A stretch of 62,947 bases of DNA, filler included, from Choristocarpus tenellus KU-1152 (lineage: Eukaryota; Protista; Phaeophyceae): the NCBI GenBank assembly GCA_964200185.2. It is 6 parts of 6 records of this genome, joined end to end, with 100 filler letters (N's around TTAATTAATTAA, not from the genome) between each part and the next. Parts side by side here need not be neighbours in the genome. Positions count along the whole stretch, not along the records: positions 1 to 31,345 come from CAXNAD020000083.1; 5 more parts are not named here. One strand, written 5' to 3'. The translations under genes and the position numbers were made by a program. Under the pieces are notes generated by a model that made no database searches, was not told the origin of the DNA, and saw only the letters and a list, made by a program, of their open reading frames with translations. Below, piece after piece: positions 1,464 to 31,345 of the stretch (the first letter of the stretch is position 1; every line of letters begins with the position of its first letter).

Positions 1464-4400
1464 ACGGAGATGGGGGAGCAATATATGCTGAGGCGTCAAC
1501 AACTCTAGACTTTGGAGGCACTTCCACCTTTCATGGTAACAGTGCTGGTAAGTTATGTCCTTCATCAATCAATATTCTTGCCCCGGAGACAGTGAAATTA
1601 GCGTCAGTTCCATGTATCTTGTCTGTTCTCAATATTGATGGAATAGGAGACTGTATTAATGTTAAGTTGTGAGCCAGGTGGACTAATGGCATACATATTC
1701 AGCACAATAAGTTCAAAAATCAACAATTCAATGTTCAATGCTGTAAGTCAAATGTTGCATAACAAAATAACCACAATATAGTAAGAGAACAGTGCTCAAC
1801 AAGTTCAAGAGCGAAATGGTTGATCCTTTGCTTAGTTCTTCTGTATACTCCAACTCATTACACCAGGCACCACAGTGACATGCAGGTGCGCATCCTCAAA
1901 ATTCATCCTCAATGCTGACAACCACTTCTGTGCACATCTGTCACCAGTTGCTAATTCGATATGATGCATTGTGAGCAGATCCTAAATATAACCACAATGT
2001 AGATTTGTTGTAATTGCTGTACTGTATAATAGCTGAGGAATTTTCTGCAGATGGTGGCAGTATCTTTCCCACACCGTATGGCATTTATTTTCTCTTGTTT
2101 GTGCATACGATGCTCTAGAGAAAATATTATGCTACTGGAAACATTTCTACACTATTAATGATTTGGGTCTTACCAAATTTGACAGGTTTAAGTGGAGGAG
2201 CTATTCAAATATATGGCTCGAGCAATCTGAGGATGCCAGGGGTATTGTACTTTGAAAGTAACACAGCGGGTAAGTGGAAGGATAGCGTAGGGGTTGATTT
2301 AGTATAGCACAATAAATTTATTGAAGAACTAAAGTATGTGGGATAATTTGTTGTAGTTGTTGTGATCCATGTTGCATTTTATTGATCTACTTTCAATTGT
2401 GTGAAATCCCCAAGGAGTTGTATCTGCAGTATTCATTGAAGCTTGACTCAAAATTTCCCACTACGACGTTTCGAAAATGCTCACAGAGAGAGATGGAGGA
2501 GCTATAGCAGCAGAGAGTGTTTCAACAATTGTCTCCGAAGGCAGTGCTCACTTTGTAAGAAATGTTGCAAGTAAGTGCAAGGTCGATGTGGTTTCACACA
2601 ACGGATGCTCGATCCAGTATAGAAGATGTTGATCCCAATCATAACATCTCTTCTGTACACCTATGCACTAGCGTAATGCCTAACATAGACATAATTGACA
2701 GTTATCATCTGATCAACAGCATGAGATTCATCATATTTGTATCCTTTTTTTTTAATTACTCTCTACATCTTCCTTTCTACTACTGACATTACTATTGCCA
2801 ATATATTTGCACGACTTAGCATGATTTGAAATCAGTTTGGGTATACTATGTTGATATTGTCTCTAAACTACAAAAATGCTGGTCACTGTTCTGCTTAAAA
2901 TTTAACTCCACCGTTGTAATCCCACACCCACTTTTTGGTTGCCCTCTAGTCTTACTTTTTAATCTTCTCCAAAAACCCAATACAGTTGAGATCATTATTG
3001 GTCACATTCATCTTGAATCAGTTCAGACTTTCTTTCAGCACCAATTGAAACCAATGACATAAACAAAATATTTAAAATACATTTTATTGCTGCAATTTGT
3101 AGTGTGAAACACTTATTGGTGTATTCATATTCCTTTGGTACGTTCAAGTCTCATGCTCTTTCTGAAGTGACCTGAATACCTTGAGATTTATTCACTGCGT
3201 CCATATTGATAAACTTGTTTTTTCATGTGAATACACTCTACACAAGAATATCTGACGGCAACAGTCCAACGTAACACTCAAGTGCACACCTTTTACTCGA
3301 AAACGTTTCACATAATTACAGATGATGACGGAGGAGCTCTAAGTGCACATGAAAATTGTACCTTCTCCTTTGGAGGCAATACCACCTTTGTCAGCAATTT
3401 TGCTGGTGAGTGCGAGGACCATGTATGTCCACCAGAGATGACTGTTTTAAAAATAATCTTCTAGAGGCTTTCTATTGCATGTATTGAAATCTGATGTCCT
3501 CCATGCAGTTAACCTTAGAATGAGGGAGGAGAGAATATACCACATTATTGCTCGTTGGCAGTGGGTATTCTAGATTATCTTGTCCAACTGTAGTACATCT
3601 TCGATACTGCAATGTACTGTCTACTTCTTCTAGGATATAGTTACGGACAACATCAATCCACTAAATCGCAAGAGATACCTCAAACGATCCCTTGATTTGA
3701 ACTATCCTCTGCTTACGTATTCTGACCAATGCCACTACTACTGCCAATGTCTTTGTAGAGCTATGCAATGTCTTTGTAGAGCTATGGATGAACTGAAATG
3801 AGTGCAGTAGACTATATTGATGCCATCTGTGAAATGCGGAGTTTGCAATAAGAAATCTGCTAGATTTTCACAACTCAGCCATGTGACCTTTCACACAACT
3901 CAGATGAAGCCCTCCAGTTCTACTCTTTAACTTCATTTCTCGAAACATATGTAGAGATTGGGCCTGAAATGATTTGTATATCGGCTAGATCATTTGATAC
4001 AAGCGTTGCTTCTGCACCAACTTGAAGAAATGGCATGTTCTTCGTTGCAAGAGTTGCTGGTATATGAATTTCTATGTGAGGAACTTAAGTCTCATACTTT
4101 TTTGGAGTGTCCTGTATACACTAAAGTTCATTCATCACCTCAATGCCGGTGAACTTGGCACATCTGGACTATTAGGACTAGCTGAATGAACCTAGAGCTC
4201 AAGAGGAACATATTGTCCTATCCTGTACCCATCTCCACATTCTTGTCCCATAGTATGGGTTCTATTTACTAAGAGGTAGAATTGAACTTCGAATCTCATT
4301 TGTGTATCACCTCACAGTGAAATATCTTAGAGGGTAGGAGTTTTGCCCTGTTTGTTTGAGCTTGGCTTCCCACGTTTTTCATTACATGTTTCGGAGTTGG

Positions 4401-7400
4401 TAAAATGTGTAACGTTATGAAAAGGTGTGCCTGGAACAAGGATATTGCCAGTTCTTAACAAACACAATAGTCAAAATTACATCCAGATCGCCACATTGGA
4501 TTTTGATGTCCAAATGGACGCGACCCTACCCTCTAAGATACTTTGGCTCTCAAAACAATTCCAGACGATACTGGAGGGGCTATAAACGCTCGGGAACTAT
4601 CCATGCTCAACTTTGAAGGAAATTCCACTTTTTATAATAATAGTGCAGGTAAGTCCATGCGTTCTCTCTTTTATTTAATGAGAAAGGTTGTTGTGTCAAT
4701 CTTCGTACAGTTCAGCCTGGAGTGGAACAAGTGTTGGGTGAACTGTGATTTGATTTAATTTGGAATAAGGAATTAGTTACTAGATATCTCTTAGACATCC
4801 ACAACTTAACCATTGTTACACCACGCCAAACTCAAATGATAGCCTCCTGTGCAGCTATTCTTCTCTCCTCCTCAAACGTATACTCTCAGATTTGGTTAGG
4901 ATTGCCCAATATTGAGGTTGAATCAGAAAATTTAAACTTTGTTTCCAGAACCAATCAAAAGAAATGATACAGTTAGAATCTTCGGAATATTGTTAAGATT
5001 GCGATTCAACGTGTCAAGAAGGGTAGCTGTTTGACGCATTTCCCTTTTACACTTTCAAGTTTTGGCTGCTTCCTCGGTGACGAATGCACCTTCTATTTCA
5101 TCTATTGCCTCAATATTGAAAAGGTTTGGACACATCTGTACCGTTAAGGATGTGTACATGAAACTAATCCCCACAAGGAATTTCCTTCATCACCTCCCCA
5201 TTCTAGATACTTAGTTTGAGTTCTATTATTGAGATGTAGATATTAATTTTGAATCCTCTCCTGTAGCTCGTTGACGCATTTACAGATAATATAGGAGGAG
5301 CTGTTCATGCTTCCACATCGTGCATTCTCAACTTCAATGGCGGTTCCAACTATCATACTAAGAGTGCTGGGAAGGCCATGCGTTTTTGTTTTTTAACTGA
5401 GCAAAATTTATATACCAATGTTGATGTATAAATAAGGATGGAGTGGAACTGGGGCTAGTTTATTTATGGCTATTACAACCTGTCAATACGGAATTGATGT
5501 TTACAACTCTTTCATACACTACTAACATGCATCTTATCACAATCCTACACCCACCTCAACTGATGCTCTACAGTGCAATTATTCTATTCTCCTGAAAACT
5601 TGTGTATGTAGATGCATTCAAGACTGATAAATATTGAAGTCTGAACATAGTTTTTTGAAAATCTGTTTCCAGCACTATCTAAAAGCAATTCATAAGAAAT
5701 GTTTGCAATAAGAATTCAGTATTTTGTTGAGAAGAGTTTAAAAAGTCGTTGGTGTATGATTTTTTTTGTAGTTGATAACCTAGCCTGTTTCGACATTGAC
5801 TTAGCTGGATTGAGCTTCAATTTTTTCTCATTGTTTTCTCCATCTGAACAGATTGAACTATTATTGGATAGGTGCATAAACCTGATTCCCACAAGGAAAT
5901 CCTTACTAATACTTCACTTATCTTCTTGTTCGTTAAATACAGAATCATGTCTCTCTTGGAAAAAAAATTTTTAGACGTAAAATATCAGTCTCCATGAGTC
6001 GAGTCAACATGATGAAACCACCAATATCCGAATTATTTCTTATCCCTAACATTGAAATAATTTCAGGAACGAATGGAGGTGCTATATATTTTCGAGACTC
6101 AACCACTCTTACTCTCAAAGACCATTCTATGTTTTTCGGCAACAGTGGTGAGTCCATGCGTTTCTTGTTGGAATGGCGACGCCTTTTCGAAGTTTTTTTC
6201 TTTCTGTTCAGAACACCAGTCAAGTTGAAAATTCTTCAATTTTTTGTAGCGAGCAAGTTAGACTAGTGTTGTTTATGTGGCAACAGTTTAGTGACTACCT
6301 TCAACAAGGTTACGCACCAAGAAAATCTGTTTAGTGCTGCAAGTCATACTTTGTAACCCAACCTGTGTTGATAGAGATGGAAGTACCTGTTGAAGATCAA
6401 TTCTAAAATGGTCAATTCTTTCCTCAAGTATATTCCGTGCAGTGGAATTTAATGCAGCCGTAAGACATCAACATGCAGGTTCACACTCTTATTATTTAAT
6501 TTGTGTGGGAAACCACTTTGGTAAACTCTTTGCACTTCCAGGAGTTAGGAGAAAAGGTACTGAAAATATTTCGACGTTGTGCAATGCGAACGGATCATGA
6601 AAAAGATGTGCTTTTCAATTTGTTGAAAATGCTACACTGTGTAATATGCTGATAACTGTTCTATACATAATCGCATTTTCTCTTTTATAGATATCACAAT
6701 ATTGGTCTCTATTTTGAGCATTAAATGTTTTGAAAAAAACATCATATCAAATAGCAAAGTTTCCTCCGTCTGTCATAATAAAGTACACATGTTCAAATTT
6801 TACAGGCATAGAAAAAAATGGAGGAGCAATTCGAATCTTTGAGTCAAGCAATCTGACCATGCTAGGAGTTATCTCCTTTGAAAACAACGCAGCGGGTAAG
6901 TGGAAGTATAGCGTATTGGTTGATGTTGTAGAATGCAATACATTTATTACAGCACTGAAGGATATTAAATATATCGATTTATAGGAAAATGTATCTGAAA
7001 ATCATTTCTCATCTGCTTCGTTTGTTTCCATAATGTGAATACCCTCGGTGTTCATCTAAAATTATGCCTCGAGCTTGAATCTTTACTCTCCACTTAAATA
7101 GTCCCCATCCCATTTCTTCCCACATATGTGCAGGAAATGATGGAGGAGCCATAGCTGTGAGTAAAGCTTCGACAGTCTTCTCTGAAGGCACTTCCACATT
7201 TGCAAGAAATTCTGCACGTATGTCAGAGGACCATGTGACCATGTACCCGATATTCTTGGTCTGATAGAGAAGATCTACCAGTTGTGCTTTCATATCAATA
7301 ATGAAAATATTATTTTTGCATTTGAGGTCAGCACTTCAAAAGTATCTGTGGGGGGGGTGGGGTCTACACCAGGGTGTCCATTCGGGCCCTGACCAATAGA

Positions 7401-10400
7401 AGTGGACTTGAATTATCCATACAACACATGCAACCAAATTTAACCAAGAATCGTGACATGGAAAAATGGGACCCAACTGGACGGCCACCACCACCCCCCC
7501 GATACATTGAGTCAGCCTGAGAAATAAGATATTTTTTTTCGACATCGGCAAGACAAATTCATAGTTCAATTCGATCTGCATAATAATGTTTCTCTATGCT
7601 GATGCACTAGTGTAATGCGTAACAGACATAATCAACAGTTACCATCTGATCAACAGTGTGAGATACCTCATTTATGTCCTTTTTGAAATACTCTGTATCT
7701 TCCTTTGCAATACTTACATTACTTTTATCAACGCCTTTACATGGCTCAGCATAATTTGGAATCAATTTGGGTAAACTATGTTGATACTGTCTCTAAAATA
7801 CAAAAATGCTAGCCATTGTTCTGCTCAAAATTCACAAGTCCACAGTTGTAACCCCACACCCACTTTTTTGTTGCTCCTCAAGTCTTACTTTTTAATCTGC
7901 TCCAAAAAAATCAACAAACTTTCTTTCAGCACCAATTGAAACCAATTCATCACAGAATATTTGAAATATTTTTTTTGCTGCAGTTTGTAGTGTTGAAACG
8001 CTTATTGGTGTATGCATATTCCTTTGGCACGTTCAAGTCTCATGCTGTTTCTGAAGTGTGACCTGATACCTTGAAATTTATTCACTGTGTCCATATTGAT
8101 AAACTTGTTATATCATGTGAATACACTCTACACAAGAATATCTGATGGCAACAGTCCAACGTATCACTCGAGTGCACACCTTTCACTCGAAAACACTTCA
8201 CATAATTACAGATGATGACGGAGGAGCTCTAACTGCGAATGAAAATTGTACCTTCTTCTTTAGAGGCAATACCACCTTTGTCAGCAACTTTGCTGGTGAG
8301 TGCGAGGACCATATATGTCCACCAGAGATGGCTGTTTTTTAAAGAAAAATCTTCTAGAGGCTTCATATGCAGTCAAATTATCTTAGAGGGTAGAGCCATG
8401 TCCTTTTGGGGCCTAATAACCAATGTTGCAATTTTGATGTCAACATCCTTGTTCGGAACTCAACCTTTCATAACGTATACATTTATCTACTCCGAAACTT
8501 TCAGAGTAGGTAAATTGCCGTAAAAACCCTGTGGGATGTCAGACCCCAAACAAACAAACAGGGCAAAATTCGTACCCTCTAAGATGCTTTGACTCTATTG
8601 CACGTATAGAAATCTGGCATCCTTCTTGCATGATGAGAGAATATGCCACGTTATTGCTCATTGGCAGTGGGTATTCTAGATGATCTTGACCAAATGTAGG
8701 ACATCTTCCATACTGCATGTACTGTCTACTTCCTCTAGGATATATTTAGAGACTATCAATCCACTTAAGAGCAAGTTTATCTATTCTTGCCATTGCCATT
8801 GCTACTGCCACTGTCTGTGTAGAGTTATGAATGAACTGAATTGAGTGCAGTAGACTATATTGATGCCATCTGTGAAATGCAGTGTTTGTGATAAGAAATT
8901 TGCTAGATTTTCTCAACTCAGATGAAGCCCTCAAATCCTACTCTTAAACCCCCTTTCTCGAAACATATGTAGAGATTGGGTCTAGAAAGATTTGGGCTAG
9001 ATCATTTTATGAAAGCTTTGCTTCTGCACCAACTTGAAGAATTGGCATTAGGTGAATGAATCTAGAGCTCTATATGATATATTATTCTATCCTGCGAGCC
9101 AAAGTATCATAGAGGGTAGAGCCGCGTCCATTTGGGGTTCAAAGTCCAATGTTGCGATTTGATTTAATTTTGGCTATCGTATTTGTTAGGAAGTGTCTAT
9201 AACTACGTTTCGGACAAACCTTTTCGTAACGTATACATTTTACCTACTCCTAAACATTTTGGAATAGGGAAATGACATAAAACCCCACGAGAAGTAGCCC
9301 CAAATGGACGAACAGGGCAAAACTCGTACCCTCTAAATCACTTTCACTATGTACCTATCTTGACATTCTTGTCCCACAGTATGGGTTCTATTTACTAAGA
9401 AGTGGAACTAAACTTCGAACCCCATTTGTGTACCACCTAAAAAAAAATTCCAGACGATAATGGAGGGGCTATATACGCTTGGGAACTATCGAAGCTCAAC
9501 TTTGAAGGAAATTCCACTTTTTATAATAATAGTGCAGGTAAGTCCATGTGTTCTGTCTTTTATTTAATGAGAATGGTCGGTGTGTCAATGTCTTTTTAAA
9601 GTTCAGCCTGGAGTGGAACAAGTGTTGGGTGAACTGTGATTTTGTTTACTTAAGGTTAGTGTTAGGGTTAGGGTTATTGTAACACCACGCCAAACTCAAA
9701 TGATAGCCTCCAGTGCAGCTATTCTTCTCTCCTCCTCAAACGTATACTCTCAGATTTGGTTAGGATTGCCCAATATTGAGGTTGAATCAGAAAATTTAAA
9801 CTTTGTTTCCAGAACTAATCAAAAGAATGATACAGTTAGAATCTTCGGAATATTGTTAAGATTGCGATTCAACGTGTCAAGAAGGGTAGCTGTTTGACGC
9901 ATTTCCCTTTTACACTTTCAAGTTTTGGCTGCTTCCTCGGTGACGAATGCACCTTCTATTTCATCTATTGCCTCAATATTGAAAAGGTTTGGACACATCT
10001 GTACCGTTAAGGATGTGTACATGAAACTAATCCCCACAAGGAATTTCCTTCATCACCTCCCCATTCTAGATACTTAGTTTGAGTTCTATTATTGAGATGT
10101 AGATATTAATTTTGAATCCTCTCCTGTAGCTCGTTGACGCATTTACAGATAATATAGGAGGAGCTGTTCATGCTTCCACATCGTGCATTCTCAACTTCAA
10201 TGGCGGTTCCAACTATCATACTAAGAGTGCTGGGAAGGCCATGCGTTTTTGTTTTTTAACTGAGCAAAATTTATATACCAATGTTGATGTATAAATAAGG
10301 ATGGAGTGGAACTGGGGCTAGTTTATTTATGGCTATTACAACCTGTCAATACGGAATTGATGTTTACAACTCTTTCATACACTACTAACATGCATCTTAT

Positions 10401-13400
10401 CACAATCCTACACCCACCTCAACTGATGCTCTACAGTGCAATTATTCTATTCTCCTGAAAACTTGTGTATGTAGATGCATTCAAGACTGATAAATATTGA
10501 AGTCTGAACATAGTTTTTTGAAAATCTGTTTCCAGCACTATCTAAAAGCAATTTCATAAGAAGAATGCTTGGAAGAAACCTTTATGGTTGTAATTTACTG
10601 TTGAAAAATGTTGCTGGTAGATACAGTTCCTGTTCATGTTGTAAACACATAGGTAGCTTCTTCATGGACTATTGTAACTTCAAGTTTAATGGATTGCCTT
10701 AAAATTGACCAACTTGAGACAAACCGTAATAAATTCAACGTGTGTTTAAGTCCAATTACACCTAGGAACTTGTTCAACTATACTTCACCCATCTCCCTTG
10801 TTAAAGATTTGTAGGTCATGGTGTCTACTCTGGTACGAACTACTATGGTGATCTCCCCTTGTAATACCCTTTTACAATTGCAGAAAGACATGGAGGAGCT
10901 CTATATTCCGGAGAATCAAGCGTTTTCAGCTTTGGAGGCTATTCCACTCTCTATAGTAACAGAGCTGGTAAGTCCTTTGTTTCTGTTCTTGTTTGACACG
11001 TTTAATTGTTTTCAGGAGGGAAACTTGAGTTGAGCCACGTCCATTGTTCTTCTATAGCATAGGCGATATGTTCTGTTTTTATTTTGACTGATGGGGGAGT
11101 GAAGCTCGTGTGATGCATGTTAACTAATCAAGAGGCATCTTATACATTGATTAATCTACTACACTTTGTTCTTCATAAATGCAGGTTTAATATTGCATAT
11201 TCTGACAGTAACGATAGTAGCCAATAGTTGAGCTACAATGATCTGTAAAGGATTGATATTTTGCTTCGCTCTCCTATTTACTTCAACTCTACTTTTCAAC
11301 ATACTAAGGATTGCATTCTATTGAAAGAGTGAAAGTAGGGTACAAAATGTAGAGACGAGGGATCACCAAGTACATGCCCCTGTTGGATTTAGCTTGTGAT
11401 TTTGGTTCAAAGTGAGACCGCGCTAAACGAAAAATATTTTGTTTTAAAATATTTTTCCTGATTGTCATTGTTGCGCTGAGTTTACTTTTATGTTAAGTAT
11501 TGTTTGTTCTTGGCAGGTAAGTGTCCCCGCGTGCACAATGTTTTGTGATGATGACACATAAAGTGCAAATCTTGTGGAGTATATATTTTTCAGATTATAT
11601 AGAAATTGTTTGTAGGGAATACTGGGGACAGTATATAGTTTGCATTCATGTATAGTAAGATATCGCTAACCCTATCCCTTCTTCAATATATTACAAGCCT
11701 TGCCTGTTTCTGTTTCTTTATAACAGTCATGCTTGGAGGAGGCATTCGAGTCTACATTGGTGGCACACTGAGTATCACTGGGATCTTGTCCGTAGCAAGC
11801 AACATTGCAGGTACTATTCCAAATTTTCTGAAACTGTTGTTCTTGCAGAGATAAATAGTACCTAGTGACATTTTTCGTATAGGATTGAATACTTTAATAT
11901 GGAAAGGGTTTCTAAAGAGACAGCATCAGCATAGGTCTTGCATTCCTCAGTCATTTGAACCTTAAAGGTCAGGGTTAGGGTTAGAGTATATTTAGAATAA
12001 CAGAAAAGATAACCAGAAAATGATGATGAGTTCATGTATAGCATTCTTTTGCTTAATAGTTCCTTTTGCCTCTTAGAAAGCCTCTGCTAGTTCTCAGAGA
12101 GTAGATTAGCTGCGGTTACTACTGGCCATAAAAAAATATTGTGGCAGTATTCATTTACATTAGTCTTCTTCAGTTTTGTGCTGGTGTATATTTTAGAGGA
12201 AAATTACCCCTCATACTTAAAATATGTATATTAGAGGAAAATATGTTTAATCTATTCTTATGTTGTGCAGTTTTGAGAAGAGGGGTTAGGATCAATGTTG
12301 CACGTCAACATGAATTAAGGATAGGGTTAGGCTTTTGAGAAGGCGTTCTCAACCATTAACTGAAACTTCAAGTCGTGAAATATCATGTATATTGAGGAAT
12401 AATCAATGATTCCAGGAAGTTTGCTATAGCTGTTTGAATATCATTGGAAAGAATGTTCAGTGGAGTCAGATTCCTTAGACATCCACATCCTTCAAATAGC
12501 ATTGAGAAGGCATTGTACTTCGGAGATAGTGATGTATTTGTCTCTATCACTTCTAAGTTGTTACCTTGGTTCCATGCAATTATCTTGGCGATGGTTGGTA
12601 TATAAGATGGTGCGACGGTGAGAATGCTCCCAACTCTTGGTACTTTGAGTTGATGATAAGGTACAAATGTCCCATCAACGGACATCTTGTAAGCTGGGTT
12701 GAATTTTTTTGACAATATTTTTTGGACCGTTTACAGGCCTTACAAATGTTTGCTGTCCCATTCGCTGCACAAACCAGTCTTCCTACCCTCCGAGAATTCC
12801 TGGTCCATATTCAGTAGGTGTTGACCTCGTTCATGTGCACTGGCAAAACCAGTTCTAGCATTCTCTAGCGTTGCTGGACCATGTCTATTGAGTATGGTAC
12901 CGATTGGTGTTCGCTGGTCGGCCAGTCTAACATTATTCTGGCATGTCCAAAATGTGTACTACGTGTTACACCAGGTGGAATATCAATTCGTTTGGTCACT
13001 TAGTGCAAACCGTGAAAAATGTGTGGAACATGCCAAAGGCCAAGCCACCCTTCAGTATGTCAACTATTCATTTTGCTTTGTTTTTTGATACGATACATCA
13101 TGACCAGTTCATACTGAATGTTGATTTGTCTTTTGTACTGGTGATTATTTCCGTTCACATCACTAACTCATCAAAATAATGTCATCAATCCCTTCTAGAA
13201 CATCACAGTACATACGAAGCATAATGACAGTCGCTACCTATCACACATAGATGCATAGGATGTGTCACATGAGTTCTGTCAGATATTGATTCAAGTTTCT
13301 CTCCTTGTTCTTTGTTTTTTTCGTTTCTTCACATTAGAAGTCTTCAGTTGTATATCATGTGTTGATTATTTTTCTTGGCTGGCATTGCCCGCTCATACTA

Positions 13401-16400: not shown

Positions 16401-19400
16401 TGGTGAGCATACAAATCGATTTCCAGACTTGACAGGTGCCTCTTTCACATTCTTGCTTAGGCAGTTGTTCTCCACTGTTTCCCAATATTCTTATCTTTTA
16501 TTAAATCAGACTTGACTCACTTGATAAATATTGAATTGGCAAGAACTAAAGTTGAACAAATACTTGAAAATTGTGAACCGAAATATTTCTCAGAAAATGG
16601 AGGAGGTCTGGCCTTGTCCGAAGCAATTCTTGGAGTGGGAATGAACAGTGAATTCCATTGTTCTAACAACACCGCGGGTGAGAATTGGTTATGATATATA
16701 TGCAAGATATACCACGATTTTGTTGGAAATGGTCAAATGAAGCATAGTGTTTAATCAAACGATGCTATTAAGATATCCCAGCAATACCTTGATTGAACAT
16801 GAACATATTCTTCCAATTCCTTCTGAGACTTATCCTCCTTGCACTTCATTCTATCCAACAAGTCCAAAACATGCTTGTGCTGTGCACTCTCTGATTAATG
16901 CTTTTAAGCAGAGGGGATGAAGGGGGTCCTTAGAGTCTAAGCCAAATGTCACACATATGATGTAATAATAACTGTGTACATCTGTGAAGAGCAGTACACA
17001 CTTTTTAGAGAGGGACATAAGACCTTTTTTTGATATTTTCTTTACCTCTTCTCTCTCATCATACCGTTGTATCGCCCCTACTTGACAACCTTTCAACACA
17101 ACTATCTGATATTTGTACACAAAAATGTTAAGTGTACTCATTGGTTGTTGCCGCAATTTTGTATAGAAGCTTCGAAAAGGGAGCATACAGTAATGCGGGA
17201 TGTTTTGTTATTTCAATTGCCTTTACGAGTGTATATTTTAGGATACGAGGTTTGCCCTACTTGTCTGTTTGGGGCTTGGCTTCCCATGGGTTTCTTACTT
17301 TTTCCTACTCCGAAATGTTTCGGAGTAAGTAAATTGTATACGTTATAAAAAGCTGTCCGGAACAGGGATATTGACACTTCCTGACAAACACAACAGCCAA
17401 ACTTTTATCAAAATCGCAGCATTGAATTTAAGTCCCCAAATGGACACCGCTCTACCTTTGAAGATGCTTTTAACTCTTATTGCACTGTTAAGATCGACCA
17501 AATACTGTAAAAGATCAGTAGTTATGTGTAGGGAAAATTTCACACTTCAGGCACTCATTTGTGGCTCACCAAATAATGCAATGAACCCAATTTTTGGGAT
17601 AAGAAGGTTGAAGAAGTGGTGATGATGTATAAGTTATGTCCACCCAAATATCATGTATAGAGTACAACTCAAAATTTTGAGGAACATGTACAAATAAATC
17701 CTGATTCGTCAATAGAGTAGTCTTGATTTAAAACATGATTTGTACGTATCACAAGATTTTATCAATATCGGAACAAAATTGTCCTTATCTTTCTAGACAA
17801 GATTATTTCGGTGATCTCTCCCTACCTCTTCTAGATGTCCAAACCCTACCTTGAGATTTTGTTGAAAAGAACAATTGTAAGGAAATCTTATATTGTTTTA
17901 ACTTATTTGAATAGAAAATATGCACACATCCCAATTTCTACACATGTTATTTAATACAGTACTTTTCCTTGTACAAATATACATGCATGAATCCATCTGT
18001 AATGAATTGCCCTTGTGGTCAGAAGTCGTAGAAATAAGTGAAAAATACAGTGATAATTTTAGACTACTACAAGGCAACATTAAAAATGCTTGTAATATCA
18101 CAAAACAAGAATGTAAAAAGGGGATTCTAAATTTGCAGTGATCATTTCTAGGATTTTCAAACCTGTTTATGTTCGCTTAGAAAGTGTTAAGAATTGGCCA
18201 ATATTGCTTTTTCTTGCAAGGTTTCTGGATTACCTGCATATTGCGTACTTTAATTTTGTCCTTGGAAAGAAATGCAATCTTTGACTGGTTTTTCTTTTTC
18301 TTTTGGTCATTGTCCTACATCCCCAAGCGAGTATGTTTTCCAGATTTTGCACAAGCGATGTACTATTTCGATCACAGGATAAATGTTTTACAACTCCAAA
18401 AGCTGTGTGTAAAATGAGAAAGCAGTTGGTCAGTTTGTTGCCTTAGGTTTGAACTATATTCACAATAGTATGTGCCTCGTCAACCTTGAACTTGATTGTA
18501 GTAGGTATCGACCTCTTTGTTCCACAAAGTATATCAGAGGAGGAAGTTGGGAGATTGCCCAGGATTTTGCATAACGTTTAATATATCTGGCAGTGTCTGA
18601 TTAGTATCGTAGTCGTGACTCAGGCTTTGAACGATACAGTTTGTGATCTTTTGACAGTAGAATTGAATTTTCCTATTCCATGATAGTTAGAACCAGGACT
18701 GACCGTTTGATTAGTGCTCCTTTCTTGTGCAAGGACCATTGGGCTTTGTGATGCACCCTTCCGTCTTCTCTCTTTGCAACAGGATTGTTCTTTACCATCA
18801 ATAACATATATTTATCCTCTTCCCTTTTTTGGCGTGGGAAAATAGTTCAACATAGCCCTCATCGAAACATATTTTCTTGGGATGACCAAAACATTTATGG
18901 GGAACCTTAATGATTCATTTTTAAATATCTGAACGAGAAAAAATTCTCATTTATTTTCTTTATATTGTCAAATCCTTACCAATTAAACTGCCAAACTTTG
19001 CTAATGTTTTTTCACACTTTTTTTTCTTCGAAATTCTGTTTGTGCTTCTCACTTTAGCTGTATGTGTTTGTGTCGATCTTGAAGATAAAGGTATGTTATG
19101 ATGTTCTCATTTGTTAGAAATTGGAAATATGTTGCATAATGCTCTTGAAAGAAGAGTTTAGATTTCACAGAGTAGACTGTTCACAAAAATAATATTTTTT
19201 GGAGCATATCTTTCTACGGATTTCTTCAGTTGATACCACTTTTTGTCCAAGGTTCACGTTAGAGATATTTGTGCTTTTATAGGGCTAGAGATGTGATGAG
19301 ATGCTAGGACCAAATTATCTTGTACATGGTCTAGTTCTAGTTCTACTTGCTTGTCACTCTGCAGTCAATGGAATGCCCCACGTTTTTTTTCCTGAGCGTA

Positions 19401-22400
19401 CGATTGCCAATTCTTTGGTTAATCTGAACAAATTCTCTTATCTCTATTTTTAATGCAGGCTTGAATGGTGGTGCGATTTTTGCGTTGGAATCAAAGCTGA
19501 TGGTTAGTGGCAACACATTGTTTTCTGGTAATAGAGCGAATAACACTGGGGGTGCTGTAGCAACATACTCTTCAGACCTTACCATGTCAGGAACAACATT
19601 CCATAGCAACACAGCATTGACTGGTGGAGGAATGTCATGCTCAGATGCAGATGTGTTTAATGTTGCAAACACAAGCTTCATCTCCAACATTGCAGAAACA
19701 GGAGGGGGTTTGGTGACATATTCTGTTGGAGCTTTCAGTGCCGACGATCTCTCTAATGGTATAACGCCAGGAATCTATTCAGGTTGCAATTTTACTGAGA
19801 ACACTGCTTTCTTAGACGGTGGAGGTCTGCTTACGTTGGGTGGATTTGCCTTAATCAAAGGATGCATATTCTCAGGCAATACTGCAGGTGAATGAGACTG
19901 TCTGCCCAGGTTAACTTATGAGACAGAAAACCCACATCAAGATAGAATGACTAGTTAGTTTTGTATTTGAATACGTAAACTCCCCCTCTACATTTGGGTT
20001 GTATGGCTGAAAAATACGCAATTTTACTAGTAGATGAAATATTGACAAGAGTGCGTCTAAGTTAAGCAGAAAACGTAACCATTAGATTTGCTAGTTATGA
20101 TGCATTGTTTCTTGCAACTCCTATTGAATTTTGTCGGTTGTTGCAACCCAAGGTCTCATTTTTGTTGTACTATGTATGAATCTCCAGGTGGAAGTGGCGG
20201 GGCAATTCTACAAGCAGGGCTTGTTGAAATGTTAGAACACTGTGTGTTTGAGGATAACATGGCCTCTTTGGGTCCTGCTATCTCTGATGTCGCATCATTG
20301 AAGAACATAAGGCTGAGCACATTCACTGGAAACTCCCTCTTTTGTGACGCGGGGATGTACGTCAAATTTGCTGACAGCTCGGATAGCCTAGACATCCAAC
20401 CACAGGTATTCAGTATTATGTTGGGTGCTGTTTAGGGCTTATTGAACCAAAGTGTTTCACAGTGACTACAACGAAATATGCTCTAACATTTGTTTTGAAA
20501 ATGATGTATTTATTTCGAAAAGGGATGATATATCTATAATTACTATTCTAACCCTAAACCTTGCACATTCCCATCAGGGTTTTGATGGTGTAAGAGCTAG
20601 ACACAACATATATGTAGATGAGCCAAACCGATTACGGGGTATGTAGCTTTGGATCTTTTTTTACTATAACATGTATTTGTCACCCTGTACGATACACATT
20701 TTTTCATTGCTTCATGTTCAAAATGGTGTACACAAGATTGATATTCCCCCATTCTACCAACAAAATGAAACCACAATTCAGCAATGGTTTTTCTGGAGTT
20801 GTGTAAGATGGATTACATTTTCCCTTTAAAGGAAGACGTCCAACCTTGCCTACCTCTCCATTGGCTTGACATAGATACCATGAGACAAGAAGAGGTGAAT
20901 ATTGATAGCTATCATCCTTAGAGTCTATCTTAGAGGGTGCGAGTTTTGCCCTGTTTGTCCATTTGGGGCTTGGCTTCCTATGTTTTTTTTTATGACATTT
21001 TCCTCACTCAATATTTTTCGGAGTAGGTAAAATGTATACGTTATGAAAAGGTGTGTCCGGAACAAGGATATTGACACTTCCTAACAAAGACGATAACCAA
21101 AATTACATCAATATCACAACATTGGATTTTGACCCCAAATGGACACGGCCATACCCTCCAAGATACTTTGACTCCATCAGCCGCACCACCTCTGTCGTCT
21201 CAAAAAGAAATGTATCAAGACAGTGTTGAACAGTACTATTGGCCCATAATTATTTTTGTTTCTATGATTTTTGACGGGGTTATACAAATACTTTTCTGAC
21301 AACATGAGTGGATGTTGAATATACAACGCAGCGTTTCTTGCAAAGAGTGAAAGTATCTTAGAGGGTACGAATTTTGCCCTGCTTGTCCATTTGGGGCTTG
21401 GCTTCACATGTGTCTTTTTATGACTCTTTCCTACTCCAAAATGTTTTGGAGGAGGAAAAAAGTATACGTTTTGAACTTTCGTGTCTGAAACATAGATATT
21501 GACACTCCTAACAAAAACGATAGCCAAAACTACATCAAAATCGTAACATTGGATTTTGGCCCCCAAATGGACGCGGTTCTACCCTCTAAGATATTCTGCC
21601 TCAAACCTTGTGTGGACAAGGCCTTATCATTATGGGCGGATTCAAATCAATGTATTTGTACAAGGGAATGATTTTTACACTTTTTGCATATAGAAAGGTT
21701 GTTGGTGCACATCTTTGTATATTTTCAAAAAGAGAGTGGTAGAATCATTATATAAAAGGCAAACACTGAAGACCGATAAAAACATTCCAAATATGTACAG
21801 ATATGTTTTAACTTGACAAGATTTAGGGACTCAGAGATGACACACTACAGACATCATTTTATCCACAACACTACAGAGTTCCTACAACATGTTAGGTTAT
21901 AGTGTGGAATGACCATCCTTTATACTTACATAAAAATAGGAAGTACTGTATCTAATTTGAGATGTAGGAATCTAGGGCTTGTACAAAATTGATAATTGGG
22001 TGAGATCACTCTTCTTACACAACAGCATTCATGATTCATCAATTTTTCCTCTCCTAGACAAAATTGTGTCCAGATGTGTTAGGTTCAGGCGTCTTCACAC
22101 CCAGTATGTCTAAGCAGACCGGAATAGAAGAAAATCGGTTGAAATAGAACGAAAAACAACAGGGCATTTGTCACACCTTGCAAATCGTTTTAATTTATGG
22201 AACGTTGGTAATTTCTCTTACCAGCTGCTGATTGTCCAATGTCTTACATAAATACATATGTGCGGTGCTAGCTTTCAGATACTAAGTAGGTTATAGAAGC
22301 TTATATCTCGCAAGACTTGTACATACATGTATATGGACTTTCGCGGGGCCAACAAATAAAAAAAATGTCCAGTGCATAGTGACTGGTCCGACAAATATTT

Positions 22401-25400: not shown

Positions 25401-28400
25401 GGTACTACACTTTGAGATGGGCTAGAACTCATGATTCCAATATTTGTGATACCTTGTGCGAGATTTGTTCCATCTTACATAAATAGAAATGGTGCAAGCG
25501 TCCTACATTAAAGAAATACAACACGAACGTGATACGAAAATGCCATAGGGTATGGAGAAAATTTCTGTATGATTGTCTGTATTCCTCCCAAGGTGCGCAA
25601 CCCAACTCCTCTATATTCTCTGATCTGGAATAAAAAGCCCTCAGAAATGGTAGGCACCTTTGCATCTCCAAGTAGATAAGCACAACTCGGACCCTAATCC
25701 CATGTTTTTTATAGGTATGAAGAATAAACTTGCTTGACTTTTTGGTGGATCACTGCCTTCATTGCACTTGACTACAAAATTCAGCAACCTATTTCCGTTC
25801 TTTATTCTACCTATTCTAAGCAGAGTATGGTTACAGTAGAGCTTTCGTCAAAGAAACCTTTCTACAATTTGTGTACCCTCACAATTTTAGAAGGTGTTAA
25901 TAATCATCGAGTTCATATTAATGACAATACAGAAATAATTAATTGTCAGTTTAAGGATCTTTCTGGTCAGTTTTACCATTATGATGAACATAATTTTATG
26001 GATATTATGTTTATTAAGCAGTTAAAACTTAATATGCAAAATATCCAGAACTCAGAGAGATTAATTAAATGGGGAGTTTTTGGATTTGTTTTAAGGATGT
26101 TAAATAGTGAATATAAAATTCCTCTACCGCACCGTAGGTAATTGTTGGCAAGAGGTTAGGTCTGAGGAATCTACTGAGAAGGAACTCTTCTATGCTGTAT
26201 CTTACTTACAGGCCAGGCTGTATGGAATCGTATGCAATGAGTGCCCTGTGTGTAACGACTGCTTTGCAGGAAATAGTACCAAATGGCCAGAATGCACTCC
26301 TGTACCAGAGCATTCAAGTAGCAATTTGCGCAATGATACAATTGAGACAATTGTGCTGGATAATGGATACTGGAGGGCAACAAATTCAACCAGCTTTATA
26401 CATGAGTGTTTTCTTGGTGAGGCATGCAGCAATAATGCTGAGACTGCCATCTGCACTGAGGGCTATAAAGGGGCATGTGAGTGCAGCTCCAATTTGTCCC
26501 CCTTATTTGTAAAGCATACCTTGTCATTGCAAGTACTTTTAAGTGGTAAGTTTGAAGGAGAGATAGAATTGAATTATAGAACGATGTAGCCTCATGCGTC
26601 TGTAGTTGTAGCATTCACTATATGTTGAGACCTCTTCCCCCACGGATGCAATGTCTAAGAAATTTGACACTCAGGTCGTTTTGCCGTGACACTTATCCTG
26701 CTCTGGATGCATCTCTTTTTGTAGAATCTCGAGTGTCATGTTTACATGGATATAACCTATTGTTTTCAAATAGAGCAGCCCCCCCACAGGTGCACACGTA
26801 TTTCTCCTAGGTCTGATGACTACAAAATGCTGCATCTGAAAGCACTTTATCTACCTCAGATTGTCTCGTTTCTGTTCTCCTATGAAACGCAGAACTCAAG
26901 AACCGCTGAGATATCCTGATATCTTCTGTGCTCACCTTTACTTTCCACTTCCTCTCTATTTCCAGACTGCACTGTTTGTGATGATGGCTTTGCTCCTGGT
27001 CTGTCATACTCCTGTAGCAAGTGTGACAACAGGAGGAGGTCGTTGTCACTTGGGATTGGTATTTTTATCTTGGCTCTCGTTGTTCTGGTTGCAGCTGGGG
27101 GCATCATGCTTCTTATGACATCATCAAGGAGGTGGAGAAAGGTTTCGGGTAGCTTCTCTGATCGCATGCAACGGGTGATATCTTTTCAAGGCCTCAAAAT
27201 TGTGGTGGTCGTATGGCAAATTACTACTCAGGCAAGTTATGTCACTCTGTCGATATATTTTCTCACTCCTCACTATCAGGTCACTTGAACAATGTAAGGT
27301 TGATGGAATAGTTATAATCCAAACTGAGCACCACTACAATTAACTGCATTGATGATATACCACAACTACTATGAGGTCAGGTCAGAAAGTGGATTTTGCG
27401 TCAAATATACATCGGCTGATGATGGGCGTTGATGGATCATTTTCAATTAGAAGGAACAACATTTTCTTATCATGGTTGAGTGTGCCATGTAGTCATACTT
27501 TCTTACATTTTATGAGGTATCACGCATGTGATACTTGCAAGTTTAAGATTTTATCTGACTGTCCAGAAGTTGCACATTTGCTACTGACAGGAGTCAATGC
27601 GTACCAGGTTGTACATTGAATTTGATGCTACATCCTCAAGCTGAATGCCAGATAAGGATAAGGGACGCAACTTGAAGAGAGAGAGATTCATAGAGATTTT
27701 GGTATATCATTGTCACTGTTCTGAAAAACGTGCTATAGGAAGAGGAAGACACCCAAAATTCTATTTTGATGAAGGTCTTAGACTTGACCTTATTTTATTA
27801 GGCCATCACATTTGAGAAACGAGGTTATGGATTGTGCCCTACACATTTTTTTTGCTCCATACCAGCTGTTGGTTGTAGTTTGCGGTTAGCATGTGAAGCA
27901 GAATCCCAAACACTCCAATAATTGTCCTCAGGAGGAATAGGAGGATCCGCCAATGGCTAGGGTCAGGATGTACCAGTCTTATTAATTACAAGAATTGGAT
28001 GTTGGCCACTGTGTTGATATTTTGTGCCTATATTATCTTATTTTCTCACCACAAGGCAAGAGGTCGCATAGTGGTGGTCATAGTTATACAGTCAAGGCCT
28101 ATGAACACTTTCAAGAGCTGCATTATGTAAGGAGCTCCCATGTGCTTCAGATGGCATGCTGGGAACAACATGAAAGAAGGAAATCAACGTATCAACCCAT
28201 AGAGTGGTGGGGGTTCATAATTCTGGAAAAAAATGGTGATCTGAAGTATATCTATTTAGTACTCTCGTATTCATAGTTTGATTTGAAGTGCCCCCCCGAA
28301 CCTTGTCCAACCTCCAGGATCCATCTCATACAACAGGTTGGTAGTCCAATACAATATTTTTCTTGCCCATCTGTGTTCTTACACTTCGGTGCCACATGCC

Positions 28401-29499
28401 GTTTGCCGCAACTCCTAACCATTACCATGATCTTCTCAACCGCTGCTTTTTTGCACCTCAGTTTTCCGAGGCTGCCAACGCTTCATACCCAGATCAATAT
28501 GAGACATTTCTCAACCTTATTGACATTGTCAACTTGGATGTTACGTGGTGGATGCGACTAATCTCTGCTGGATGTGTTGTTAGCATGAATTTCTACGATT
28601 ACCTGCTGATATCAACCCTTGGACCACTTACGATTCTCTTCGTGCTGGGGATAACTTACAAGTTTGCAATGATTAGAAACCGAGGTGGCCCAGAAGCAAC
28701 TCTGATGAGGATTAGGCGGAGACACATCTCAGTTGGATACGCGGTAACTTTCCTTGTTTTCTCATTTTCTTCATCCAAGATCTTTCAAACGTTTGCCTGC
28801 GAGGAGCTTGAGGATGGCAAGACATACTTACGAGCTGACTACAGCCTGGAGTGTACATCTGATAGGCATCAAGCCTTCCAGGCATACGCCGCAATTATGA
28901 TCTTCGTCTACCCTTTGGGTATTCCAATCCTGTATGGATATATTTTCTTCGCCAACCGAAAAGCCTTGATGAGCAAGAAATCAAGTGTGGGAAATCCAGA
29001 CCTGCAGCCCTTTGTGGAATTATGGCGGCAATACAAGCCAAAACGATTTTACTTCGAGTTGGTGGATCTCGGTCGCAGAGTAGTACTAACTGGGATAGTT
29101 GTGTTCATCTATCCTGGCACTGCTGCACAAATAGCTATAACATTCATGCTTGCTCTGTGCTTCCTGTGGCTCACTGAAATACTTAACCCCTACAAGAACG
29201 TTAAAGACATGTGGCTGTCAAGGGTAGGAAACTTCGTGATCTTGACTAGCATGTTTGTTGCCCTCGTTGTCAAAGTGGATGTAGAAGGTGAAAGCAGTTC
29301 TAGTCAGGAGATGTTCTCCAATATTATCATTTTCGCTCACGTTTGCATGGCTGCCACAGTGTTGCTGAATTCACTAGTGATCATTTTATCTTCTTTTGGA
29401 TGTTTATCTCTGCCAGAAGAGTCCATAGAACCACGTAAAAATCAGCACGGGGCTTTAGATGACGATGATGTAGGTTGTGAGGATATCCAGTCTCCATAG
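1464..29499 (+). CDS. 5'-truncated multi-exon gene: Pmp-like (GGA[I/L]...FxxNxA) beta-helix repeat protein with Cys-rich stalk and multi-pass transmembrane C-terminus (adhesin/receptor-like)
   Basis: Exons read by eye, all after AG: 1464-1547, 2186-2269, 2487-2570, 3322-3405, 4565-4648, [5286-5369], 6067-6147, 6806-6895, 7134-7217, 8212-8295, 9454-9537, [10149-10232], 10884-10967, 11727-11810, 16594-16677, 19459-19887, 20188-20405, 26212-26476, 26966-27231, 28462-29499 (TAG). Phases join into one stop-free frame (about 1100 codons without the bracketed GG-donor exons). No start codon or signal peptide in the window. Confidence 0.88.
4315..4549 (+). mobile_element. MITE family A copy, TSD TCA
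   Basis: TCA at 4312-4314 and 4550-4552; empty paralogous site at ~9438. Confidence 0.9.
5286..5369 (+). pseudogene. Repeat exon E6 with non-canonical donor (GGAAGG); probable silent or pseudo-exon
   Basis: CAG acceptor at 5283-5285; open frame xNIGGAVHASTSCILNFNGGSNYHTKSA; donor reads GGAAGGCCATGCG where sister exons read GTAAGTCCATGCG or GTGAGTCCATGCG. Confidence 0.6.
7333..7513. mobile_element. MITE family B copy, TSD AGC
   Basis: Termini ...CAAAAGTATCTGTGGGG and CCCCGATACATTGAGTC; AGC on both flanks; opposite orientation to the 23928 copy. Confidence 0.8.
8369..8595 (-). mobile_element. MITE family A copy, TSD TAT
   Basis: TAT at 8366-8368 and 8596-8598; empty paralogous site at 3473-3475. 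Confidence 0.9.
9096..9349 (-). mobile_element. MITE family A copy, TSD TGC/TGT
   Basis: Empty paralogous site with single TGT at 4224-4226. Confidence 0.9.
10149..10232 (+). pseudogene. Repeat exon E12, identical copy of E6 with the same GGAAGG donor
   Basis: Sequence and flanks identical by eye to 5286-5369. Confidence 0.6.
12400..13200 (-). mobile_element. Highly degenerate Copia-like integrase relic (intron)
   Basis: Frameshifted fragments resembling the (T)PEQNGxAERxNRT and VYxLKxKS integrase motifs; many stops. Confidence 0.35.
13690..14700 (-). mobile_element. Degenerate mariner-like transposase relic interrupted by MITE A
   Basis: Minus-strand fragments RIDE (~14680), FPKVIFI...DFDRECGIWRI, TQSAQSPDLNINDLVFF, then after the MITE VDELVEGV...RVWQGQFKRYSQVL...NNFEVEH. 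Confidence 0.75.
13846..14103 (+). mobile_element. MITE family A copy nested in a mariner relic
   Basis: TIR GAGTGAAAGTATCTTAGAGAGTA ... TACCCTCTAAAGATACTTTGAGTC; flanks ACA/ATA. Confidence 0.88.
17227..17476 (+). mobile_element. MITE family A copy (degenerate left end)
   Basis: Internal sequence and right TIR match the other copies. Confidence 0.8.
19459..20405 (+). CDS. Receptor gene: two larger exons with further GG(A/G)...FxxN repeats leading to the stalk
   Basis: Exon 19459-19887 (429 nt, phase 1-1; NGGAIFALES...FSGNTA) and exon 20188-20405 (GSGGAILQAG...FTGNSLFCDAGMY...QPQ|GTATTC). Confidence 0.85.
20921..21174 (+). mobile_element. MITE family A copy
   Basis: Matches family consensus; ends AGATACTTTGACTC. 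Confidence 0.85.
21345..21602 (+). mobile_element. MITE family A copy, TSD AAA
   Basis: Starts GAGTGAAAGTATCTTAGAGGGTA; AAA on both flanks. Confidence 0.88.
23928..24108. mobile_element. MITE family B copy, TSD TCA
   Basis: GGCTCAAAGTATCTGGG ... CCCAGATACTTTAGGTC; TCA on both flanks. Confidence 0.88.
24450..24950 (-). mobile_element. Highly degenerate Copia-like reverse transcriptase relic (intron)
   Basis: Fragments resembling YVDD (here LDVDNI) followed by DLGE...FLG; frameshifted. Confidence 0.3.
26212..27231 (+). CDS. Receptor gene: Cys-rich stalk and first TM exons
   Basis: Exon 26212-26476 (CNECPVCNDC...LDNGYWR...CFLGEAC...CTEGYKGA) joins exon 26966-27231 (YCTVCDDGFAPGLSYSCSKC, hydrophobic helix, GLKIVVVVWQITTQ), which ends at a GC donor (CAG|GCAAGT). 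Confidence 0.85.
28462..29499 (+). CDS. Receptor gene: terminal exon encoding the multi-pass transmembrane domain
   Basis: In frame within ORF 28363-29499 after CCTCAG; about 7 hydrophobic helices; motifs FQTFAC...YLRADYSLEC, VYPLGIP, YKPKRFYFELVDLGRR, LNPY; acidic tail. Confidence 0.9.
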   Translation, partial: FSEAANASYPDQYETFLNLIDIVNLDVTWWMRLISAGCVVSMNFYDYLLISTLGPLTILFVLGITYKFAMIRNRGGPEATLMRIRRRHISVGYAVTFLVFSFSSSKIFQTFACEELEDGKTYLRADYSLECTSDRHQAFQAYAAIMIFVYPLGIPILYGYIFFANRKALMSKKSSVGNPDLQPFVELWRQYKPKRFYFELVDLGRRVVLTGIVVFIYPGTAAQIAITFMLALCFLWLTEILNPYKNVKDMWLSRVGNFVILTSMFVALVVKVDVEGESSSSQEMFSNIIIFAHVCMAATVLLNSLVIILSSFGCLSLPEESIEPRKNQHGALDDDDVGCEDIQSP

Positions 29500-29900: not shown

Positions 29901-30155
29901 GAGTGAAAGTATTGTAAGGCGTACAATTTTTGCCCTGTTTGTTTGGGGCTTGACTTCCCATGCCAGTGTTTTTTACATTTTCTTACTCCGAAATGTTTCG
30001 GAGTAGGTAAAGTGTATACGTTATCAAAAGGGGTATCCAGAACAAGGATATTGACACTTACTAATGTACATGATAACCAAAATTACATCAACATCTCAAC
30101 ATTGGATTTCGGACCCCAAACTGACACAGTTCTACCCTCTAAGGTACTTTGAGTC
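29901..30155 (+). mobile_element. MITE family A copy
   Basis: Matches consensus; flanked by TGAT on both sides (4-bp match, unlike other copies). Confidence 0.85.
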
Positions 30156-31345
30156 TGATGTCACATGAAGTGAGGTGCTCTGAGGGGAGGGTTGTGTTCT
30201 TGTGGAAGTAAGGTTGTAGTTCTACTGAAACAAATGGAACCAATAAACTTACAGAAGGAAAACAAACACATGAAATGCACGTACTCTGTATCCGTACATG
30301 ACAAGGATTGTGTTACAGGCGCCCCTCTCAGAACTCACTTCAACAGGATGTACAACTCAAATCCAATTCACAGATTAACATACATCAGCTCAGCAGAACA
30401 GGAGTACTCTCAGGTGAATCAAGCAGCACAAGGAAAATAGGTTTATTGATATCAGTAAGAGAGAACTGAAAAGGTGGGGTCTCTGTGTCAGAAACACTGA
30501 GCCGTTTGGAGCCGTTTTTAGGATCTCTTATCATCATTTATCGTTGGGGCTTCTTTTGGTTTACGAACATTGGAATATATCTGAGAACCTTTGCGACCTT
30601 TCCATCTGGGACCCTTTGTGACATTCCCGAGTTAGAGATTTTATTCTACAACTTTTTAGTAAATCGGAGTTCCCCCTTCTGGGTTTCCTCACTCGCGTAC
30701 GCTGCTCGCGCCGGTTAAAGGGCGGGAAGAAATATTTGCGCTATTGGCCTGTAACATGCCCCCCAGCGTGTTACAGTAGATTACCCTATTTTGGGCCAAA
30801 TATTATGAACCAAATCGAAAATAATCAATTTTGTACCGTTTTTTTTCGACATGCTCAAAAATAGGATTTTGTACCGGAATTCTCGTATTCGGGAGATTTG
30901 GCACAAATCCCAGAGATATTCACGCAAGAGTGGCGCGTGCGCAAAAATTTCTTGCGAAAAGTGCCCTTCTTCTTGGGTCCTGCTACCATACAGCAGTACA
31001 GTATGTTACTGGTAGGGGAATAATGTGGAAGTCCGCCTTGTGCAGCGGGAAACCTTGGCAAGATGCCTTCAAACACACCAGGTCCGCCTTTCTACACAAT
31101 CCACAAGTGCCGTAAGTGCAGTAGGTACCTCCATGGTATAGGTGGTGTAAAGCATCCCAAACTCAACGATGACTGCAAACGTTTGTGCGAGGGGCAGTGC
31201 TTGGCACTGCAGCAAGTCGCAAGCACTGACTGCAAGGGCACATTGTTATCGGCTTCATCGCTCGGCTCACTGAACGGTAGCTCGTCTGGTGCTGCAGCTG
31301 GCAGCCGCGGGCAGAAATCTAGTGCCCCTTCCAGGAGGGGTCATG

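Follow-up and report, generated by a model that had tools for sequence, protein, structure and literature searches.

Gene structure at the locus

The window analysed is a stretch of 62,947 nucleotides from the genome of Choristocarpus tenellus KU-1152, an early-diverging brown alga of the Discosporangiales. It joins six parts of the assembly, the first of which (positions 1 to 31,345) is contig CAXNAD020000083.1, hereafter C83. An unbiased scan for AG..GT splice sites and repeat motifs recovered 15 consecutive exons on the plus strand of this contig, 13 of 84 nt, one of 81 nt and one of 90 nt, all in phase 1/1 and each encoding one Pmp-type repeat. The motif scan found 15 repeats on the plus strand, none on the minus strand and none in any of 20 shuffles. 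The array of phase-1/phase-1 one-repeat exons that had been proposed from the sequence alone was thus recovered independently, and since every cassette is phase 1/1, the repeat exons are indeed frame-neutral. Multi-repeat exons, a Cys-rich stalk and membrane helices (E16 to E20) follow the array, as had also been proposed, and the frame is open across E1 to E20 (1159 aa). The exons and the main duplication are as follows.

E1, 1464..1547, plus strand: type A single-repeat exon, first of the array; splice scan, RNA joint to E2
E2, 2186..2269, plus strand: type B; scan, RNA joints E1>E2 and E2>E3
E3, 2487..2570, plus strand: type C; scan and RNA
E4, 3322..3405, plus strand: type D; scan, RNA joint E4>E5
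E5, 4565..4648, plus strand: type E; scan and RNA
E6, 5286..5369, plus strand: probable dead exon with GG donor and decayed motif
E7, 6067..6147, plus strand: type F, 81 nt; scan, RNA joint E7>E8
E8, 6806..6895, plus strand: type B duplicate, 90 nt, 74% to E2; acceptor at 6806 confirmed by RNA joint
E9, 7134..7217, plus strand: type C duplicate, 68% to E3; RNA joints E8>E9 and E9>E10
E10, 8212..8295, plus strand: type D duplicate, 93% to E4; own alleles present in RNA
E11, 9454..9537, plus strand: type E duplicate, 94% to E5
E12, 10149..10232, plus strand: copy of the probable dead exon E6, 100% to E6
E13, 10884..10967, plus strand: A-like exon in the F position (A')
E14, 11727..11810, plus strand: type G, 80% to the C373 exon
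E15, 16594..16677, plus strand: type H; scans
E16, 19459..19887, plus strand: about five repeats in a single exon; PF02415 30 bits (cut-off 20.6), Atlas Pmp clusters at 0.96
E17, 20188..20405, plus strand: final repeats and start of the stalk; 5' intron position common to Ectocarpus homologues
E18, 26212..26476, plus strand: Cys-rich stalk
E19, 26966..27231, plus strand: end of the stalk and membrane helices 1-2; GC donor (27231-27233)
E20, 28462..29499, plus strand: membrane helices 3-9 (PF06011-like), short acidic tail, stop
Internal tandem duplication, 2186..10967, plus strand: six-exon block E2-E7 copied as E8-E13, about 4.7 kb in length; identity uneven along the block, ranging from about 60% to 100%

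The start of the gene lies off the contig. At the corresponding position, the paralog on contig C373 has one large exon that encodes a hydrophobic N-terminus, by eye a signal peptide, and PF02415 repeats. An RNA contig extends 478 nt upstream of E1, which fits a large 5' exon as in C373, and the 5' exon with the signal peptide of the C83 gene sits beyond the contig edge.

The contig carries several further features. A MITE-like element of about 260 nt, bounded by imperfect terminal inverted repeats and containing an inner palindrome, is present in nine copies (606-866, 4313-4552, 8365-8602, 9093-9354, 13845-14103, 17225-17472, 20915-21177, 21345-21603 and 29901-30163). Its summed depth is 60,000-90,000, compared to ca. 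24 for single-copy DNA, which points to a copy number in the thousands, and its insertion sites in C83 are not common to C373. Intron 17 contains an AT-rich insertion of about 280 nt (25844-26123) that is missing from C373 and C1520; for the 137-codon open frame spanning it, no Pfam match and no other copy in the genome were found, and intronic open frames had no Pfam match. A GC-richer open stretch at the contig end (31024-31345), with no Pfam match in the plus frame, is probably an exon of a neighbouring gene. At position 4585 in E5, the two sequencing runs with depth there (X1 and X3) carry T instead of the assembled A; the T changes Asn to Tyr, matching E11, and reflects either an assembly error or a strain allele.

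Transcription, splicing and probable dead exons

The C83 gene is transcribed and its exons are spliced in order. None of the runs is registered as RNA, but run X3 behaves as such and carries the GT..AG joints E1>E2, E2>E3, E4>E5, E7>E8 (in the 90-nt form), E8>E9 and E9>E10, the last detected as a back-jump to E4 carrying the alleles of E10. Expression, whose absence had been put forward as evidence against the sequence-only reading, is therefore present. All six joints link neighbouring exons, and no skipped isoform was seen in the RNA contigs, which come from this one run at a depth of 2-6, cover E1 to E9 and drop rare forms.

No RNA joint into or out of E6 was found at the low depth of run X3. 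E6 and E12 are identical, have a GG donor in place of GT, and have both lost the FxxN motif, while in their C373 counterpart a 1-nt deletion shifts the frame, the GG motif is broken and the donor reads GA. We therefore rejected the assumption that all 15 exons are functional; E6 and E12 are most likely dead exons, judged by their splice sites and motifs. DNA depth over the E6/E12 block is 43-45, compared to 22-27 elsewhere, and because of this doubling the two copies are real and an assembly artefact was ruled out. Of the 15 repeat exons originally counted, all are present in the sequence, but as two of them are most likely dead the live array would comprise about 13.

Predicted fold and membrane domain

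Pfam searches with the protein-coding exons returned only PF02415, above its cut-off in E16, and a weak match to PF06011 (E 6e-6, 25.8 bits) that stays under the curated cut-off of 28.5. The fold of the whole protein was taken from the homologue P0170 as a proxy for the product of the C83 gene. Its AlphaFold model (pLDDT 87.5) shows a regular beta-helix that is followed by a Cys-rich stalk and nine long helices, and together with the PF02415 match it is in agreement with the Pmp-type beta-helix repeats suggested before. E20 modelled alone has seven long helices (pLDDT 86); with two more in E19, the predicted number is nine, the upper of the eight to nine originally estimated. The predicted topology, with the N-terminus outside and the tail inside, fits nine helices. 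With a beta-helix geometry of ca. 0.48 nm per rung, each cassette would add one rung, and about 23 rungs would form a rod of roughly 11 nm.

Structure searches with the membrane domain found no matching solved structure. A GPCR fold was rejected, as the best Foldseek TM-score was about 0.2 with an E-value of 0.23, and the VIA matches represent generic bundles. Among predicted models, the domain matched a Megaviridae 'TRP' model with a TM-score of 0.56 and Atlas clusters, with TM-scores of 0.64-0.87 for a cluster with PF06011 and of 0.64-0.84 for clusters of diverse eukaryotes with varied partner domains. The fold occurs in haptophyte, chlorophyte and animal-labelled Atlas clusters, combined there with a domain of the Ephrin_rec_like, TIR_2, START, EF-hand or DUF7630 type. 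From these model comparisons, it appears to be a common receptor platform for which no structure has been solved.

Growth of the array and its paralogs

With x denoting the E6/E12 type, the exon types of C83 follow the order A B C D E x F B C D E x A' G H and those of C373 the order A B C D E x F G H. The two genes are colinear through their introns at 70-80% identity, with eight live and one dead exon in C373 versus 13 live and two dead exons in C83. The extra six-exon block of C83 is a mosaic: E8 and E9 are no nearer to E2 (74%) and E3 (68%), respectively, than to other paralogs, and ca. 750 nt around E6 and E12 are 100% identical between the block copies. In addition, introns that follow exons of types A, E and F begin with similar sequence. 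This pattern suggests an old duplication that was later overwritten by conversion or unequal crossing-over.

A profile search of the whole genome for GGA/FxxN cassette exons gave 54 matches at E < 0.02 on 14 contigs. E16 and E20 each have five close copies, and two remoter E20 copies, located on C20337 and C1745, are interrupted by stops within the match. By these matches, the clade that carries the cassette layout is specific to the species and comprises five to seven genes with about 54 such exons. The assembly (164 Mb in 27,310 contigs) is too fragmented to judge gene clustering. C18221 has the order B C D E A. For 14 further contigs the exon order was taken from match coordinates only, which indicate an F>B junction common to C5304 and C21153, the order B-A-G in C1520 and C-(D)-E-A-A-G in C4280. 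Exon order is hence colinear between paralogs, with block gains, losses and some new junctions, and the arrays appear to vary by gain or loss of multi-exon blocks together with patchy conversion. Antisense repeat exons were absent from the three array contigs examined (C83, C373 and C18221), and the large introns of C83 contain no hidden or antisense repeat exons. Of the shuffled, variable array that had been envisaged, the variation in exon number between paralogs stands, but the exon order is still traceable and no exon is antisense.

Related genes in brown algae

E20 has 8,666 relatives at an E-value of 0.001 or better, and in a quick tree the five close copies form the species-specific clade with 100% SH-aLRT support. 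Proteins of brown algae and Tribonema annotated as 'polymorphic outer membrane protein / adhesin-like' (Ectocarpus CAM9114240.1 and CAN0274558.1; Tribonema A0A836CF41) have the same domain order as the C83 protein, and such relatives share ca. 30-50% identity with it in the membrane exon. By this homology, the C83 protein belongs to a common and widespread brown-algal Pmp-repeat/PF06011-like family. The proposal of a new class of receptor is not supported at the level of the protein: the family is widespread, mostly without the cassette layout.

In most of these relatives, among them the closest Ectocarpus genes and one Pylaiella gene, the repeats are packed into one to three large exons. The downstream intron positions of the closest Ectocarpus genes are the same as in C83. 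Annotated models from Ascophyllum, Hapterophycus and Chrysoparadoxa mostly show multi-repeat or irregular exons, and in C15859, a paralog in the same genome, the repeats are uninterrupted. Three Ectocarpus genes share with C83 a phase-1 intron directly in front of the final repeat exon. Its register is that of the C83 cassettes, and it is a plausible seed for exon duplication.

The only relative with cassettes of 81-87 nt is CAM9183884.1 of Ectocarpus sp. 12 (L026:2089-7384), with six such phase-1 exons and one double exon of 168 nt. Its exons are cut within the second Gly of the Gly-Gly pair, i.e. in an offset register, and the gene is placed in another clade. These cassettes, known from an annotated gene model, likely represent a second origin of the layout.

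Intronless copies on giant-virus-like contigs

The best-scoring relative of E20 (48% identity) belongs to a group of 15 intronless genes, a cluster drawn from metagenome contigs in ENA, JGI and Logan assemblies, and falls within brown algal sequences in the quick tree. In this cluster, L021:5001-8657 is a full-length intronless Pmp-repeat/nine-helix gene on a gene-dense contig, with genes for a GIY-YIG nuclease and an ammonium transporter as neighbours. A further full-length intronless copy (L031:6919-10776) lies among DUF5832, DUF7197, AAA, exonuclease, kinase and ankyrin genes, a set which we take to be giant-virus-like. Both contigs appear giant-virus-like. A scan of IMG/VR with E20 yielded no confirmed locus.

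Selection on the repeats

Substitution rates were estimated with core and outward positions divided by the repeat pattern rather than by a structure model of the C83 protein. Against the paralog C373, the ratio omega was 0.67 (0.44-0.98) in the single-repeat exons, whereas E16-17 had a value of 0.44 and the membrane exons one of 0.57. Overall, omega in the membrane exons was ca. 0.4-0.6, and such a high value even in this part suggests relaxed selection across the clade. Residue differences from C373 amounted to 35% in the single-repeat exons versus 20% in E16-17 (Fisher p=0.001). Core positions had an omega of 0.3 (CI 0.16-0.54). For the outward positions (all non-core), the estimates were 1.04 (0.67-1.60) and 0.92 (0.65-1.32), thus not significantly above 1, and dN was 0.34 (0.26-0.45) compared to an intron distance of 0.24-0.30. 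The scaffold is conserved, with the surface changing at about the neutral rate. No conserved catalytic residues were found at outward positions.

Probable origin and possible function of the array

We consider it fairly probable that the locus encodes an expressed plasma-membrane Pmp-repeat protein with an array shaped by germline block duplication. The protein would consist of a signal peptide, a right-handed beta-helix rod, the Cys-rich stalk and a nine-helix PF06011 (Pkd2/Flc-like) domain at the plasma membrane. The rod may project into the wall or matrix and bind a polysaccharide or protein partner in adhesion or wall sensing, while the membrane domain may relay a signal or act as a channel. 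An old phase-1 intron at a repeat boundary would have let units of exon plus intron duplicate, resulting in one symmetric exon per rung. Germline unequal crossing-over and conversion could then have added, removed and homogenised blocks of exons, leaving dead exons behind, so that paralogs would differ in rod length and surface.

Two known protein types share parts of this architecture. Chlamydial Pmp autotransporters have the same GGA(I/L/V) and FxxN repeats (PF02415), a predicted beta-helix and a likely adhesive role, but the C83 protein combines the repeats with a eukaryotic Cys-rich stalk and an alpha-helical membrane domain; as its C-terminus is a helical bundle and not the autotransporter beta-barrel, we rejected an assignment to them. 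Fission yeast Pkd2 and fungal Flc proteins (PF06011) likewise have a nine-helix membrane domain behind an extracellular N-terminal domain, and the weak Pfam match and the predicted fold matches to PF06011-labelled models point to them, although the score is under the curated cut-off and the ectodomain differs. Pkd2 is reported to be stretch-activated and calcium-permeable (PMC9727806).

Alternatively, the layout may be a non-adaptive by-product, with symmetric exons duplicating and decaying freely in a redundant, relaxed clade and the rod being a mere spacer whose length and surface carry little weight. The about neutral rate at outward positions, an omega of 0.5-0.6 in the membrane exons, the dead exon copied along with its block and the stops in C20337 and C1745 are all consistent with it. 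We nevertheless regard this as unlikely, in view of purifying selection at the core positions, of the gene's expression and splicing, and of a layout that occurs in two registers in two lineages.

Slightly less probable is a variable immune or recognition receptor, in which combinatorial splicing of cassettes and diversifying selection would provide many binding surfaces per gene. The models for it are the LRR-ROCO genes and the NB-ARC-TPR genes of brown algae, which carry one repeat per exon (Zambounis 2012, PMC3341825; Teng 2024, PMC11378527); repeat-per-exon arrays in brown algae were reported to be overwhelmingly limited to genes of the LRR and TPR kinds, most of whose products are predicted to be oriented towards the cytoplasm. 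The C83 clade resembles these systems in having one repeat per frame-neutral exon, an exon number that varies between paralogs and a layout found in a single clade of its family. E6, E12 and the C373 counterpart are most likely inactivated repeat exons that lie within introns on the coding strand, as at NB-ARC-TPR loci, and the two offset registers of C83 and Ectocarpus sp. 12 recall type I and II LRR exons. The greater divergence of the single-repeat exons, an outward dN of 0.34 (0.26-0.45) compared to an intron distance of 0.24-0.30, the intronless copies on giant-virus-like contigs and the splice variants reported for ROCO (PMC11378527) also speak for such a receptor. However, the six RNA joints seen all connect neighbouring exons and omega at outward positions is not significantly above 1. 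ROCO loci contain intact repeat exons on the non-coding strand, but C83, C373 and C18221 have none, and the exon order, scrambled between recent LRR-ROCO and NB-ARC-TPR paralogs, is traceable in the C83 clade, as in brown-algal LRR-kinases. The family is also small, at five to seven genes. As for gene birth and death, two of these close paralogs have stops in the match. The scaffold differs as well, being a predicted extracellular beta-helix on a nine-helix membrane domain instead of a cytoplasmic protein with ROC-COR or NB-ARC. Membership of the C83 gene in either family was rejected, as Pfam detected no LRR/TPR, ROC-COR or NB-ARC domain.

A membrane-anchored enzyme that modifies wall polysaccharides, such as a beta-helix lyase or epimerase, is very improbable: the weak Foldseek neighbours of the homologue model do include tailspikes, PL6 lyases and alginate epimerases, but all at E-values of 0.01 or worse, catalytic residues are not conserved at outward positions, and a fixed active groove would not tolerate rung numbers and surfaces that vary freely.

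The searchable literature, which leaves many subscription papers outside, holds no description of a one-repeat-per-exon layout for Pmp repeats or of the C83 clade, in agreement with the earlier remark that no description of this organisation was known for Pmp-like brown algal proteins. A more far-reaching proposal, which we regard as unlikely, is that exon-cassette beta-helix receptors evolved at least twice, in different registers, that recombination and splicing diversify the recognition of microbes, viruses or partners, and that intronless copies captured by giant viruses serve them as decoys or attachment proteins. If true, these receptors would be an extracellular counterpart of the LRR-ROCO and NB-ARC-TPR systems.

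After LRR and TPR, the Pmp repeat is a third scaffold for brown-algal repeat-per-exon arrays, here on the predicted cell surface. Its route may be traced from intronless repeats through a boundary intron to cassette duplication, with block gains, conversion tracts and dead exons. The clade may therefore offer a clean case for asking whether repeat-per-exon arrays are adaptive or arise merely where symmetric exons can duplicate.
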